Shown in pieces: positions 122-25,026 of a DNA stretch of 34,322 nucleotides; the stretch's first letter is position 1; each line of letters opens with the position of its first letter. Location of the stretch: assembly GCA_001655205.1 (NCBI GenBank), contig LPNZ01008417.1, positions 1 through 34,322 of the forward strand, given 5' to 3'. Below the pieces are notes generated by a model that worked only from the letters and a program-made list of their open reading frames with translations, did not search any database and was not told the DNA's origin. This stretch comes from Lenisia limosa. Taxonomy: Eukaryota; Protista; Breviatea. The translations under genes were made by a program, and so were the position numbers.

Positions 122-2010
122 TTATTTACAATTAACAGCTCTCATATTGCATAGATTTCCACAAATCACACTGGGCTAGTTTTTGGTTGATATTGATTGA
201 CCCCGAACTCCAAACGATATAACCGCGTACCGGGTCTAATGAAGGCGGCGCCGGATTGGACGTCGGCGGCGGATTAGACATCAACTGTCGAGCTTCATCA
301 CGCTGTCGTCTTTCTTCATCCAGTCTCTGCTGTTCCTGCTGAGCTCTGGCTTCCGCCTCTTCCCTGTCCCTCCGAGCCTTCTCATCTGCCTCAGTCTGTA
401 ACCGTCGCTCTCCCTCCTCCTTCCGAAGTTGCGCGTCCCGGGTGTCTTGCTCTGTTTAGTAAAAATGGCGAACCTGCCAACGAAAGGCAATGGGCTCGTA
501 TTTTGGGAATATGAAAGTAGTGCCCACCGATTTTCTCTCTTTCAATTCGATCGTTCTCCTCTTTTCGAGCCTTCTCTTGCTCTTTTAGCCTAGACAATCA
601 CACAACTCAGAAAAGACAGGAAGAACTGTTCGGTATTTACGCAAACAAAGCGATATATGGGTCTATAAAGACGAAAATGGGTCGGCTTACCTTTTGTCTT
701 CCTTAGCCTGAGCCTCCTCACGTGCCTTCTTCTTCCATGGGTTGTCGGCCTTGGCCTCCTCAATCTCGGCCCGGGCTCTGTCCGAACTTGAACGCATGGG
801 CTGGCGGTGTTAGCAATGGGACAGCGATGAGATGTGAATAATTAGCAATGGGACAGCGATGAGATGTGAATAATTAGTACAGAAAGTTTTCATACTTACC
901 TGAGAAGCTGCTGGAGCGTCGCGAGATGCCTGTGCTGCGGCTTCTGCTTCCTCTCCTCCTTAATTGTAAAGAAAACAAAGGTATTTCAGTCATGCAAACT
1001 AACACTGGAAATATTGATGTAGGCGATGCGCATTTTAGCAATGAACAGCCAAACGTACCAGGGTGCGTCCATGATGTCTCCTCTGTCTCAGTGTTGCCAT
1101 AGTAGACCCTGCCGTCAGATGTGGTCATTTTGGTCCAGTTCGGAGGCAGTGATGCTGCGTTGTGAGAGAAATCCAACAGTAATTCTTCTTACGGTCGGCA
1201 TTGGACTCCTTCTCCCGCTGCTGTCGAGAAGCCAAAATTTGTTTGTCACGAGCTTGGGTCTATAGTGTCAGAATGTAAAACTCATGCAAAGCAGGACAAG
1301 ACCCCTTACAGCCGCAGTGTCAGTTGGTATGTCGCTGATGTTTGAGGGGAGCGCTTTGCCAACCTCTCGCTCTGGAGTGAAGGGGTCTGCAGTGTTAGCA
1401 GAAACCCCAGCAATTCGGACGAAAATATCAGCAAAAAGGCGATAGCATTGCTCTGCTAAAGCACAAGCCAAAATGTCACTACAAAGATGGCTTAAAGCAT
1501 TTGAAGTTAATTGCAAGATTCCTCAATCGGACAATGCAAAACTCGGCTCCAGCTGATCAAGAGCCTTTAACAACTACTGAATACATGCCTACAAGCAACT
1601 TCGAAGGTTTCATCACTGTCCTCACTGCTGTCGCTTTCATACTCATCTTCCTTGGAGGCTTTGCGCCTTGGTGGTGACGAGGAGCAAAAGGGACATTCGG
1701 GAAATTATTCCAACATCAAGATGTAAATTCATACAAGAGCAATATTAAAGGAGAGGAAAGACGAAGAGGGGGGCGGGAAGAGACAAACCGTTTGATCAAG
1801 GCTCCACGAATTAGGTCCATGCTAGGCTCCTCTATCGTTTTCTTGTCTTTAAACTATTCGTCTTTGTAAAGTATATATATCATAGTAGAAGATGTATCCA
1901 AGGATCCATGTCCAACGTCAAAAAAATTCGATGACGCAGTTTTTATAGGATATAATTCCTGGTACAACTACCACAGTCTCTGATGCCCTATAAACCGGAT
2001 AAACTTCCAT
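122..2010 (-). CDS. Multi-exon WW-domain protein with a charged coiled-coil C-terminal half; both ends approximate
   Basis: Exons join in frame through GT-AG introns: ...EKESNAD|PSLPPNWTKMTTSDGRVYYGNTETEETSWTHP (canonical WW: W..YY......W.HP), then E/K/R/Q-rich helical exons (KKKAREEAQAKEDK, RLKEQEKARKEENDRIEREK, EARAQQEQQRLDEERRQRDEARQ) and PPPTSNPAPP. The start (ATG at 2010) and the last exon are tentative. Confidence 0.6.
810..877. repeat. Perfect 32-bp tandem duplication in an intron of the WW gene
   Basis: TTAGCAATGGGACAGCGATGAGATGTGAATAA at 810-841 and 842-873, followed by TTAG. Confidence 0.9.
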
Positions 2011-2160
2011 TAAACTTCTTCACCTCGCTCCTCTACTCAACCAGCCAACTCAGTCAACTCCCCCCCCCCCCNNNNNNNNNNNNNNNNNNNNNNNNNNNNN
2101 NNNNNNNNNNNNNNNCTACAATTTGCCACTTGCTGCCACCCTCTCCAAATCTTCATCCTC

Positions 2161-4464
2161 ATGAGACAAGCAATACTCTTACTTTTTATCACATTGCCTC
2201 TATTGGCTTATGCATTTACCCTCAGTACTGATGGCGTCTACCATCAATTCAGGTAGGAGTTAAATTGACTTCTGAATCACAGACAATGCCCACAGATTTG
2301 ATTTACTTACAGAGTTTCCACCCCCATTGAGGCGGAGCACGTAGCAACGAAGGAGTATGTGGATGCCCTCCATAGCAACATCACATCGTTGACGGACGAA
2401 ATCCAAAACTTGAAGGCTGAACTTCAGGTAGATAGGTGAAAAATAATAAAAGCGAATCTGACATATTGCAAAACCCCCGGTAACCACCACTTTTTTTTTC
2501 AAGAATATTGACTAATAATCACAACTTTTTTTGGCTTCAAGTGTAGGAAATCCCTTGATAGATTGACGACGCGGAGTTTATTGCCATTTAGAACCTTGCG
2601 GACAGAGGCACTCAGCTTCCCAAAATAAGGGGCTACAGATTGGTAGGATAATGTACTTGGTTTGTTATTCTTTGAGACAGGAAGTCGTCCTTTAATAAGC
2701 CTACCAGCCCCGCATACCTACTCAAAACGCTATGTGTTTGCCAACGCACAGTCTACTTCAGGGTATGTTTCGTGTCATAATAAAAGGTTACTGACCTATG
2801 TACTCATGGCATCTCAAAATGAATCAGAGTGTCTTGTTTTCTAAACGACCAGAACTGAGTTGGTTTCAGTGGTAAATTATGACCCGACAAGTATCCAACT
2901 CTATGTTAGTGCAAAGGTCTGTTACTATCTAGGGGAAAGAAACATCATTGTCTTAGCTTTTCGTATCAATCCGGAGATTTGACGTTTATTAGAACGAAGC
3001 GACACCAGAATCAGTCAATGTCATTGTCTTGGATTTGCCTCTTCAATTATACTCTTATTTTGAGGTTGCTGAGAGTATATCATTTGGCCTTTTTGGCACG
3101 TATCTGACAGGGCTTGACATTCTAGCACGGGACACGAACCGATTATTCATTCAATGAAGTCCAAAGTTTCTTCAACACCTATTACAGTGCCCCTGCCATG
3201 TTTATGATGCGAGAGGTAAGATAGTTAAACATCATATTGTTTTCTATGATAACTTATTGTACATGTTATACGTACTAGTGACGCCAGTCCCGATAGAATA
3301 TGGGAAAGCCCTCGTTCATCCCTCTGAACAACCTGAACACAATCAAACTTTTCCCACTCCCTCCCCATATTCTTCGGGACTGGCGTCACTAGTGCAGATG
3401 GGATAGCATATAGTATATCGATATTTCATATTATAGCTATGCGTAGTACCCAGTGGCATTGCATGATAATAACTAGGTTACTTTTGATTTTGCTTTTTCT
3501 CACCACACAGGTAGTAGATTTTTCGGAAAGTGGAGGAATTTCGGTTTGCAGGGGTTATTCTCATGCCATGCTAGTTTGATTTATCTCTGTTTCTAGGGGC
3601 GTATTGAGTTTTGGTTTGTACCCAATTATGATACATTATTTTGGCCTAGCCTGGTACCAATTCGAATTTACATACCATCACTGAAGAAGACCATTTTTGA
3701 CTATTCAGATGAGAGTTGGCGGAGATGTCACTAAGTCGGAAGCCAATGGTGTTCAGTGTTACGGCTATAACAACCAAATTTCGTAGGTGGTTCCTTAAAG
3801 TTTCCTTCTTTTTCATACTTGTAGAACGTTCACATATCAGTATTTTGTGACTGAGCTGACAGCACCTCTCAGTTTTGCAAACTTCCAAATTGGCATATCC
3901 GCCTTGGTTTGTAATTTGTTATTGCCATCTGTGACCTTACGATTACATTTACGGATGTTGAGGGGCATATTTTGAGGTAACTGTTTGCTTTGGCCTCACC
4001 CTTTCGACCCTGCCCATTTTCAAAAAGTTGTGTATATATGATATACGCACATACAATATATCAGTAGTCGCTATACATGTCATATCAGAGTATAGTATTA
4101 TAGTCTGATAGTGAATATTATTCACCGCTGCAGAGGACCGTTACTTTCCCTATCAGCTTCGACACTGTCCCTGTTGTAGTAGTGACTATCCACAATGGAA
4201 GTGGCAACTCAGCTATTGGAATAAGTAGGGAGATATTGAAGTGAGAACAAAACACGAAGATCATAATCTAAGGCACAAAGCGTGTCCTTTGAATTGCCAG
4301 ATGACTTTTTAGCGGTTCGTTCAGTGTCGACAACAGGTTTCACCTTTGCCACAGTACTTAGCCTTGCGGCAACTACTCAAGTATGGAGATCTGTTAATAT
4401 GACTGGTGCTAATTCTATTTAGCCTGGAGTGACGTTCTCTTGGATGGCCGTTATCCCAGCTTAA
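2161..4464 (+). CDS. Secreted 301-aa adhesin/lectin-like protein: signal peptide, ATKEYVD motif, coiled coil, three H-type-lectin/gp53-like repeats
   Basis: 13 exons with consistent phases: 2161-2252, 2313-2427, 2606-2642, 2681-2762, 2853-2916, 2993-3064, 3126-3215, 3511-3543, 3709-3782, 3873-3906, 4134-4224, 4301-4380, 4423-4464 (906 nt, TAA stop). N-terminus MRQAILLLFITLPLLAYA is a signal peptide. The C-terminal repeat reads FQIGISALRTVTFPISFDTVPVVVVT...AVRSVSTTGFT...VTFSWMAV. Confidence 0.8.
3273..3394. mobile_element. 122-bp MITE-like element with ~31-bp terminal inverted repeats ending in CACTAGTG, in intron 7 of the adhesin gene
   Basis: Left end (T)ACTAGTGACGCCAGTCCCGA-T-AGAATATGGG matches the reverse complement of the right end CCCATATTCT-TCGGGACTGGCGTCACTAGTG. 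A related copy lies at 6891-6980. No clear target-site duplication. Confidence 0.65.
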
Positions 4465-4560
4465 ATCAGTGTATTATTTATTTCTCTATCATATACTATT
4501 TGGAGCAGCTCCATGTTACCTATGTGACCCCTTTAACACAGCTCCATTAAATAAAAAAAC

Positions 4561-5904: not shown

Positions 5905-6360
5905 TGTAAGGTATGGAATGGGTTGGTGTTCGTCTCGTCTTCTCTTCTTCTTGGCCGCTTTTGCGTGGCTTTTGGTGGGCTTTTTTTGCTTCCCCTTTCT
6001 AACTGGAAGGAATGGATGTGATGGGGATGGTTTTAAGCATCCCCGATGGTCGCTGGCCGGCCCGAGGAGCCTCTTGGGTATCAGATGGGTTTAAGTTGGT
6101 GCTCTCTTGGTGGGTTGATCGGTTGATCTCGTTTTGTGACCGTCCCTGGGACTTTTGGGTGGTGGCAGTGGTGGGCTATTGGAGGATAACACCCTCAGTG
6201 TTTGGGATGGGGAGGGGCGAGTTAGAGGTTGAAGCACGGTTGTAGTAGTCAAGTTTTAGTTTGTTGGCTCACTGTGTACAAAAACACGAGTAAATACATT
6301 CAAAACCAGTAGAGCCCAAGTAAGTCTCTCAGAAGCAACATGACGGTTCTTATCCCTTGT

Positions 6361-9300
6361 TCACCACCCGTATTTAGCCTTTGCTTGCATCCTATGATTT
6401 CTTCCGGATCCGAACTTTTCACGAAGCTCAAATTCATCCTGCAGCAGTGAGGAATCAATTGTCTCAGACTACCCACCTGTTTATACTGCCAAGCTAGAGC
6501 AGTGATTTGGTGTTTCCTCTTTTGGACACTGTTCGGGTTGAAGCCACTGTTTGCTGCGTCCTGAGAAATAAGAGATTGAATGAAAAAGACTGGGCTCATG
6601 GGGACAAGGAACCAAAGGATAAGACAAGCATTAGCATCTGTGACCTCTTCGAATTGCTGTTTACCCCCTCCCATACTCGAACTGAGGCTGTTTTTCTATC
6701 CACTCTCGCGAACGAAACGGCATCTTCATGTCCTGCTAAAGTGTCTATTGAAACTACATCCTGGATGAGGCAGTCGGGTCCGGCCTGCCTCATTCGGTCA
6801 AGCTGCGAGGGGGTAAGTAGAAGTTCTAATAATGGCACGAAAAAGATCGGTAAATAATCATACGTCAAACATATGTTGTACCATATGATGCACTAGTGAT
6901 GTCAGTCCCGATAGAATATGGGGAGGGAGTGGGAAGAGTTTGAGTGTGTTAAGGTTGTTCAGAGGGATGAACGAGGGCTTCAGCCGAGTTACTCTGAACA
7001 CCTGAAACACAAACATTTGCGCTACTGTGTCACCAACACTACCAATGACAATGCTGTCCACTTCATCACTCCCATCAACACTCCTTTATGTAGGGAGGTC
7101 ATCCCGAGACTAATTTGACCAATTGTCATCAAATAGGATTGGTCATGTCCAAAATTGATTCTCCCCAAAGGATTAATTAGTACAAATAAAGCTCATAATT
7201 AGGGCTTTTCATTAGTCGAAAAAAAGAAAATATGGATTTATCAAAATAGACCATGACATTCCATTTTTTTGAGACTAGAAGGGAAAAGTCATTCAAATAG
7301 AAAGGCGTTTCTTTTTTCTTTTTTTTTGAAAACAATAATTTATTCTTATGCTTCAATTCCAAATAATCATCTAAAAAATTATTTTACATGAAAAATAAAT
7401 CCAAAAATCTGCCAAATATGGAATCTCGATGAATCGCATATCGTTAGGTTACTCCCTCTGTCCCACCTCTCTTTGTTCAGACTTAGAAAGGCCGATTTTT
7501 GGTTGAGGCTTGACCTGCTCTTCCTCCTCCATAACTGGCTCAATTGCTTCGAATTCATCTGTATTGTGAGACATGAAGGGCCAAGGTTCAATATTGAGGA
7601 AATCGTGCGGCACCCTCCAGTTTGTTGGCAATATTACGCTCCAATTTTCGAATTCAAGCCCAACCATGCGTTTCAGTGAGGGGAATCTCAGAAGTGCTTG
7701 AAGGAAAAGTCTCGACCGGCTCATGGCACACTTCGTCATGAATGCTCCGGACCTGCGGGCCCTTCGGTTCCTTCGGAGGCGATACCGGTGCCGAGGGCTC
7801 TTCTTTCGCCTTAGGCTGGAGTGGCGTTAGCCAAGGTTAAACGTTTGATTCCCCCCAGTATCATAGGACAGGAGCAGGAATTATTCTCCACTCACTTGTA
7901 CCAGGGGGACGAATTTACGTTTCGGGTCGGCCTTCGTTGTTGGCTTAACTTCTGATGTGAGTTCCGAAACAAGCTGACGATTTGTTGGGGCTGCAGAAAC
8001 CTAGAAAGGGGGGGGGGGGNNNNNNNNNNNNNNNNNNNNNNNNNNNNNNNNNNNNNNNNNNNNNNNNNNNNNNNNNNNNNNNNNNNNNNNNNNNNNNNNN
8101 NNNNNNNNNNNNNNAAAAAGCAATAACAAGAGCAACCATCGCTAAAACTAGACAAAAACACAAAAGCAGAAATAAATGGAAAATTTATGAAACAAAACAA
8201 AAGCCTCAAATCAATTCTGTTGGCTAAAGCTGACACATCTTCAAGGGTTCAAAAAAACAAAACAAACAAAGCCCAGGACAGATACCAAAATGAGGCGGAA
8301 AGGCATTAATGCAAAAAAAAACTGAAAGTACCAGATGACAAATCAATATGACAAAAACATAGGCAAATATCAAAAGAGTCCATTCCTTGAAGGGAAACTA
8401 TTCATGCTAAGAATTATATATACATATCAGCCTTGCTTTCCTAAATCCCAAATTTAACGACAGATATTAGGTTATGAAGCACAAAATAATTCCTATTTCA
8501 ATACCGGAAGAGAGTGCGATTCCACTATAAAATCTAGTAATAGAGCAGAAGTTATAAATTGAAAGTGCGTGTGGCCTACAAGACATACTTATTATTACAT
8601 TGACGATGATATGATATTACACCATATATGATATGCTAAGCGCCAATCAACAGAAAAAACAACCTGGGGTGGTAGAAGCATGGAGTGCGATTTGAAAACT
8701 TTTTTCTTGACCTCTTCTTGAGGAACCTCTTTGATCTCTTCCTTTACTGGCTGAGGCTCTTCTTCCTCAATCACTCTATATTATCAAACACTGTTGAGTA
8801 CAACTAGAGATGCGATAGCCAACAATGGGGGGGAAAGCCCGGGTCGATTGACAAAGGCAAGTGTAACACTCCCACCTGTATATTTCATTTCCTGAGATGA
8901 CAGGGACATCCTCTACCTCGTCATCGCCAAAGTCTTCTTCTTCCTCCAAGAGCATGTCAAATTTGGGGTTTGTCAGACTCTCAAGGAAAGATGTGGGAGC
9001 ATCTTAGCAATAAGGATATGTCAGGGTAGGCTTCACAAAAAACGAGGTATTGTCAAGATACTATATGCAAAAGGTTCAAAAAAGCTTGATAAAAAGTAAA
9101 CAAAAAAAAAAAAAAATAGATGTTCAAAAGAGAGAAAATCAGTCAAATGAAGATTTCCTTAAGCAAAATGTGCATACTGAATTTGAGCTTCTTCCCTTTG
9201 CTTTCTTTCTCTTTCTCCTCTTCCTCAAGAATCTTAAAGAATAAAACAATCGAAAAATGGTAAACAATGGCAAAACTCCATTCTTACAGATTCATCAACA

Positions 9301-23552: not shown

Positions 23553-25026
<1,474 letters not shown>

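Follow-up and report, generated by a model that had tools for sequence, protein, structure and literature searches.

A putative secreted lectin of a breviate with a tail-fibre-type neck and an H-type lectin head

The closest published architecture to that considered here is the fibre of a Cyanophora paradoxa polinton-like virus, in which two phage tail-fibre repeats are combined with a C-terminal H_lectin domain (PMC12220804), and phage-like fibre proteins are carried more generally by polinton-like viruses of protists (PMC12220804). Among the phages a short motif with the consensus P-T-x3-H/D-A-A-T-K-x-Y-V-D is present in P2 gpH, the side fibres of P1 and lambda, the end of the N-terminal domain of T7 gp17, mycobacteriophage minor tail proteins and streptococcal phage hyaluronidases, and some of the fibres that bear it end in a Gp53-like_C tip (e.g. 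P0058). The shaft of T7 gp17 that follows the motif is a coiled coil. The known H-type lectins, of which Helix pomatia agglutinin, the Dictyostelium discoidins, an Acanthamoeba H-lectin protein and the pilus minor pilin CofB were used for comparison, are trimeric GalNAc/Gal binders that recognise other cells (PMC11377244, PMC6048534), and Pfam describes their domain as a homotrimer. A third point of reference is provided by the collectins, ficolins and angiopoietin-like proteins of animals, in which a signal peptide precedes a neck that oligomerises and includes a short coiled coil, with a glycan-binding head at the C-terminus. Animal innate immunity relies centrally on multivalent lectins carried by oligomerising stalks. 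We know of no H-type lectin that has a phage-fibre neck.

The DNA analysed here (34,322 nt, hereafter the window) is contig C8417 of a 49-Mb assembly comprising 11,727 contigs. It has a GC content of about 40% and contains scaffolding gaps and interrupted genes. The contig is eukaryotic, with a GAPDH gene at 23816-24502 (Gp_dh_C, E 5e-42, the Pfam match stopping mid-domain) and a WW-domain exon at 877-1176 on the minus strand (Pfam E 7e-10), which is the immediate upstream neighbour, in divergent orientation, of the gene that is the subject of this study. That gene, on the plus strand, is probably a host gene for a secreted lectin with a tail-fibre neck, a coiled coil of about three heptads and a C-terminal H-type lectin domain, a reading that draws on sequence comparison. 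Like the C. paradoxa virus fibre it belongs to a eukaryotic setting and pairs a phage-type repeat with an H-type lectin head, but the C. paradoxa protein is viral and its repeat is Phage_fiber_2, whereas the gene in the window is host-encoded, intron-rich, predicted to be exported and a member of a family with swapped heads. With the phage fibres and tailspikes it shares the neck motif, recognised in both directions of search, but these have from 3 to 27 tandem copies against one here, and the gene differs from them in its signal peptide, its introns, its eukaryotic locus and its lack of a particle-attachment domain. The layout is the same as that of the collectin group, with which paralogues of the gene share even the fibrinogen-like head, but there is no collagen stalk and the neck has no sequence relationship to that of the collectins, resembling viral fibres instead, so that the likeness to collectins and ficolins lies in the manner of working and not in membership. 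What is new is thus an exported host lectin with a viral-fibre neck; H-type lectins and phage and viral fibres are already known, and no new category is involved.

The N-terminal exons and the tail-fibre-type neck

Exon 1 (2161-2252) supplies the start codon and a signal peptide composed of one basic residue, about 15 hydrophobic residues and a small-x-small cleavage motif. The signal peptide claimed in the original prediction was recovered, with a mean Kyte-Doolittle hydropathy of 2.43 over a core (residues 4-18) that follows the single basic residue, and the paralogues described below open with similar signal peptides. No C-terminal hydrophobic tail or membrane anchor is present in the predicted product, which is predicted to be secreted. 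Upstream of the start codon, at a distance of 46 nt, is an assembly gap (2072-2115) that follows a poly-C run, and the reading frame is open from the start codon back to this gap, so that an additional upstream exon is possible.

The neck repeat occupies approximately 2317-2364 within exon 2 (2313-2427). A search of 1.84 billion representative proteins with a profile built from three breviate copies of the neck yielded 1193 matches at E<=1e-3; of the best 150, 132 carried the motif at least three times, frequently in strict tandem, and those matches that were examined were phage tail fibres, tailspikes or phage hyaluronidases. PHROG tail-fibre families matched the motif-bearing proteins with E values down to 3e-38, Pfam placed Phage_T7_tail, Collar, Peptidase_S74, Gp53-like_C, DUF2793 and Phage_fiber_2 domains on them, and tblastn of the same proteins against phages led to P2 gpH, P1, lambda-type side fibres, BcepMu and mycobacteriophage minor tail proteins. 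The matches of the profile to PDB were weak (E 0.09 to 1.3), and 11 of the 12 were to phage fibres, tailspikes or phage hyaluronidases, all of which we take to be trimeric fibre proteins.

For the converse search, 408 repeat units taken from non-breviate proteins were made into a profile and run against every open segment, in all six frames, of the window and ten further loci (96.5 kb); the repeat units had been collected with the breviate profile and the two tests are therefore not fully independent. Exon 2 scored 38.3 bits (E 3e-10), the next-best match being at 8 bits (a 30-bit gap), whilst two paralogous neck exons gave 40.9 and 34.8 bits. The original identification of the N-terminal motif as a tail-fibre repeat withstood searching in both directions. 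The positions matched are P, T, H, A, T, K, Y, V and D, and thus are not only hydrophobic ones. The reverse profile found a single copy in the gene, whose fibre likeness is confined to the approximately 20 residues of the neck.

The neck used as a single tblastn query against phages yielded only E>=1. The repeat was matched by no Pfam model, although it occurs in many PHROG tail-fibre families; PF03406 (Phage_fiber_2) had no match on exon 2 at E<=10, and this family is present in only one of 45 motif-bearing fibre proteins. Whole-genome searches with a single neck exon and with the phage protein P0130 recovered known copies only, with a filter that is too coarse for 20-residue motifs, and DNA patterns of the motif occurred genome-wide at chance frequency (2 matches against 1 in the control, and 13 against 18), which makes them useful as pointers only. 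The neck repeat is continued directly by a stretch of coiled-coil character (approximately 2359-2427), in which hydrophobic residues at exon-2 positions 16, 19, 23, 26, 30, 33 and 37 mark out three heptads that begin at the V of Y-V-D. The heptad stretch of the earlier reading is thus upheld by its hydrophobic spacing at all seven positions, and weak leucine-zipper matches in Pfam (E 0.003-0.005) were also obtained with this exon.

The lectin head, its paralogues and the reuse of the neck

At the other end of the gene, exons 10 to 13 encode what is, from its profile matches, a predicted domain of the H_lectin / Gp53-like_C type, situated at the extreme C-terminus of the predicted protein. The domain opens with a Q-I-G strand in exon 10 (3873-3906), for which an alternative acceptor at 3841 is frame-compatible with exon 7; C8283, the closest paralogue, also has the Q-I-G motif, in a 96-codon open frame and 13 residues ahead of its lectin exon. 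Exon 11 (4134-4224) encodes the first half of the domain, exon 12 (4301-4380) the central strands with a conserved T-G-F-T-F motif, and exon 13 (4423-4464) the last strand, with a W-x-A motif, and the stop codon. Exon 11 alone matched H_lectin (PF09458) at 19.9 bits (E 8e-4, positions 1-24 of 67, cut-off 24 bits) and Gp53-like_C (PF21882) at 20.5 bits (E 7e-4, positions 21-46 of 84, cut-off 24.9 bits), and exons 12 and 13 taken singly had no match in Pfam. That the H_lectin match falls below the Pfam cut-off is explained by the division of the domain over three to four exons, which are scored exon by exon.

A further test is provided by the paralogues. A genome scan with H_lectin found ten lectin-type exons, and the paralogous lectin exons, scanned singly, matched H_lectin in ten out of ten cases (best E 2.5e-4) and Gp53-like_C in two; the window itself was absent from the matches of a genome scan with the Pfam Gp53-like_C model. 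When profiles were made from the paralogues only, leaving the window out, and the whole 34-kb window was scanned with them, exons 11, 12 and 13 were its top matches (34.5, 24.6 and 17.4 bits), collinear and on the plus strand, exon 12 being collinear in six paralogues and exon 13 in four. A C-terminal domain of this kind had been proposed originally from its pattern of residues, and the Pfam matches of exon 11 together with the recovery of exons 11-13 by the paralogue-only profiles support the proposal. PDB profile searches with the lectin exons returned a pyocin side fibre at E 0.62 together with noise, and no solved H-type lectin; a scan of viral contigs with the lectin exons found no relatives, and exon 11 had no significant tblastn match among phages. 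In a language-model atlas exon 11 adjoins Gp53-like_C, H_lectin and mixed clusters, mostly of phage origin, with scores of 0.83 that serve as a lead only.

The C-terminal lectin domain is present with the same exon layout in at least nine paralogues, and the neck in at least four other dispersed, intron-containing genes. Two of the latter have a different head. In C7934 (segment C7934:4000-13999, approximately 6310-6660 and downstream, minus strand) and C10460 (segment C10460:5500-11500, approximately 1800-3600, plus strand) a signal-peptide exon is followed by the neck, a short coiled-coil exon and a fibrinogen-like head, with Fibrinogen_C scores of 25.9 and 25.6 bits respectively, both above the Pfam cut-off. 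In the C10460 segment a second signal-peptide exon (approximately 1720-1673, minus strand) is arranged head to head with the fibrinogen-like gene, its body being hidden by assembly gaps. A further copy of the neck (26 bits) is found on the short contig C6784. In C8136 (segment 1-5500) a probable neck at approximately 1980-2025, read by eye and scoring 8 bits (E ~1) in the reverse test, lies upstream of an H-lectin head at 3429-3973 and is apparently split by an intron immediately after the residues A-V-T-K; searches that require the whole motif in one exon will therefore miss such copies. For most H-lectin paralogues a neck was not found within the 2.8-5 kb upstream that were inspected, a stretch of 3-5 kb in the majority of cases. 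Upstream of the H-lectin paralogue in C8283 (segment 2500-8324) there is an open segment rich in G/S/L/A repeats, like a fibre shaft (4427-4558, minus strand). The overall pattern, as predicted from these sequences, is one of a small set of exported proteins with a common stem and differing heads.

The gene model and its middle exons

An important consideration is how much of the gene between these two ends can be relied upon. The 13-exon model proposed originally was rebuilt from the sequence, with exons at 2161-2252, 2313-2427, 2606-2642, 2681-2762, 2853-2916, 2993-3064, 3126-3215, 3511-3543, 3709-3782, 3873-3906, 4134-4224, 4301-4380 and 4423-4464, all on the plus strand. It was exactly reproducible: all introns are GT-AG and from 38 to 295 nt long, and the 906-nt coding sequence specifies 301 aa with no internal stops. 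The model is not unique, however. Exon 2 can be linked to exon 11 by some 5.6e15 stop-free GT-AG chains if exons of at least 12 nt and introns of 30-600 nt are permitted, and 20 shuffles of the same stretch produced from 1e13 to 1e17, i.e. as many as the real sequence. A frame-consistent GT-AG path is consequently without weight for exons 3-9 (2606-3782), each of which, the chain count being at chance level, needs support of its own, and frame-consistency as evidence for these exons was ruled out by the shuffle control. Three shorter models (276, 161 and 139 aa) keep the frame just as well, with junctions 3215/3841, 2427/3841 or 2427/4134, and in these alternatives exon 2 can be joined directly and in frame to exon 10 or exon 11.

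The candidate exons 3-9 (about 150 residues), which are frame-consistent only, have no match to a Pfam family, a PHROG or a paralogue. Exon 7 resembles one segment of the C8283 paralogue at a non-significant level (E 4.8) and loosely resembles a second, which precedes the Q-I-G strand (E 7), and exon 4 is loosely like the first of these segments when read by eye. A transcript-derived protein of the gene was not found among the best 150 of the 1193 matches in the representative-protein search. The original reading of three divergent repeats was not supported: repeats 1 and 2 score nothing against the H-lectin exon profiles and were rejected as detectable lectin domains, and the three-repeat reading of this gene is a guess. 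Tandem heads do occur in the lectin family, C10670 (segment 1-5000) having two tandem lectin-type domain starts at approximately 1149-1340 and 2788-2871. Part of intron 7 is certainly non-coding, since it contains a 120-bp MITE-like element (3274-3393, strand unassigned) with perfect 20-nt terminal inverted repeats, which has at least 14 copies on other contigs (77-93% identity) and a second copy in the window at 6889-6980. An AATAAA polyadenylation-type signal (4550-4555, plus strand) is located 86 nt past the stop codon.

What stands, then, is that the gene is real and that only its two ends are established. The description of it as a eukaryotic, intron-containing gene for an exported protein is supported. 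Hand-built multi-exon models of this kind may look complete though half the exons carry no evidence.

Origin and possible role

On sequence grounds, viral-fibre type is demonstrable for the neck only. The idea that a whole fibre-derived gene had been domesticated exceeds the evidence: only some 20 residues of neck are demonstrably fibre-like, the neck is also found on fibrinogen-like heads, and the head matches H_lectin in all ten paralogous exons as against Gp53-like_C in two. The H_lectin match is common to the ten paralogues, that of the window gene itself being sub-threshold and scored exon by exon. The presence of the neck on fibrinogen-like heads is more suggestive of a neck module that has been shuffled than of the capture of a single complete gene. 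A eukaryotic virus is a plausible donor because the polinton-like virus fibre joins tail-fibre repeats to an H_lectin head. It may be, and this is offered tentatively, that the free-living protist lineage captured a viral or phage fibre neck, of trimerising kind, as a shared stem for exported lectins with interchangeable heads (H-type and fibrinogen-type). This would be an invention in the style of the collectins and ficolins but independent of them, possibly for catching prey bacteria or keeping bacterial partners at the cell surface.

Other explanations have to be considered. An ordinary, vertically inherited eukaryotic H-type lectin, the neck of which arose by convergence on a short trimerising motif, would be in keeping with the occurrence of H-type lectins in Acanthamoeba, Dictyostelium and animals (PMC11377244), with the predominance of H_lectin over fibre-tip matches among the paralogous exons (10/10 and 2/10), with the shortness of the motif and with the failure of single-sequence phage tblastn to go below E 1. 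It is rendered rather doubtful by the observation that a profile of breviate copies returns phage fibres almost exclusively, by a reverse match of E 3e-10 that stands 30 bits above the next, and by a correspondence that takes in P, T, H, A, T, K, Y, V and D and so extends beyond hydrophobic residues. It is improbable that the neck and lectin exons belong to no single product, as they would if a decayed or mis-assembled copy, two genes or a pseudogene, had been read as one. The exons supported by profiles or by the signal peptide are intact, in order and on one strand, with a start codon, a stop codon and an AATAAA signal, direct in-frame joins from exon 2 to exon 10 or 11 exist, and the paralogue C8136 has a probable, if weakly scoring, neck exon upstream of its lectin head; these points have to be set against unsupported exons 3-9, frame-consistent paths that arise by chance and an assembly gap just upstream of the start.

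The architecture of the Cyanophora polinton-like virus fibre, with two tail-fibre repeats and a C-terminal H_lectin domain (PMC12220804), also raises the question of whether the gene is simply the fibre gene of an integrated eukaryotic virus (polinton-like virus, virophage or giant virus), or a very recent capture from one. This is highly improbable given that at least four spliceosomal introns are required by the supported exons alone, that the signal peptide is eukaryotic, that a host MITE lies inside intron 7 and that the GC content is host-like (0.45 in the exons, compared with 0.33-0.49 per 1-kb bin across the window). Moreover the neighbours are a WW-domain gene and GAPDH, no viral hallmark was seen among the window ORFs scanned, and the neck recurs in at least four other dispersed, intron-containing genes. 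An integrated virus at the window locus is accordingly unlikely.

If the gene does specify a secreted lectin with a fibre-type neck, the neck and coiled coil would bring chains together, most likely three of them, since trimers are formed by the motif-bearing phage fibres and by H-type lectin domains alike. A short stalk would then present the lectin heads at its far end, where they could bind glycans with multivalent avidity, candidate targets being the surface glycans of bacteria, prey or attached partners. The neck would act as a reusable stem, carrying fibrinogen-like heads instead in the two paralogues, and as it is shared across head types the family may work like the collectins and ficolins, with a virus-type stem. 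A bacterivorous or epibiont-bearing protist might plausibly use such proteins to catch or hold bacteria.

Should this reading be correct, it would mean that parts of viral fibres can be recycled into host recognition proteins, and that the collectin-style design arose more than once, here in a deeply branching lineage related to the animals and fungi. These proteins would be concrete candidates for the bacterial attachment machinery if the organism proves to be the epibiont-bearing breviate.
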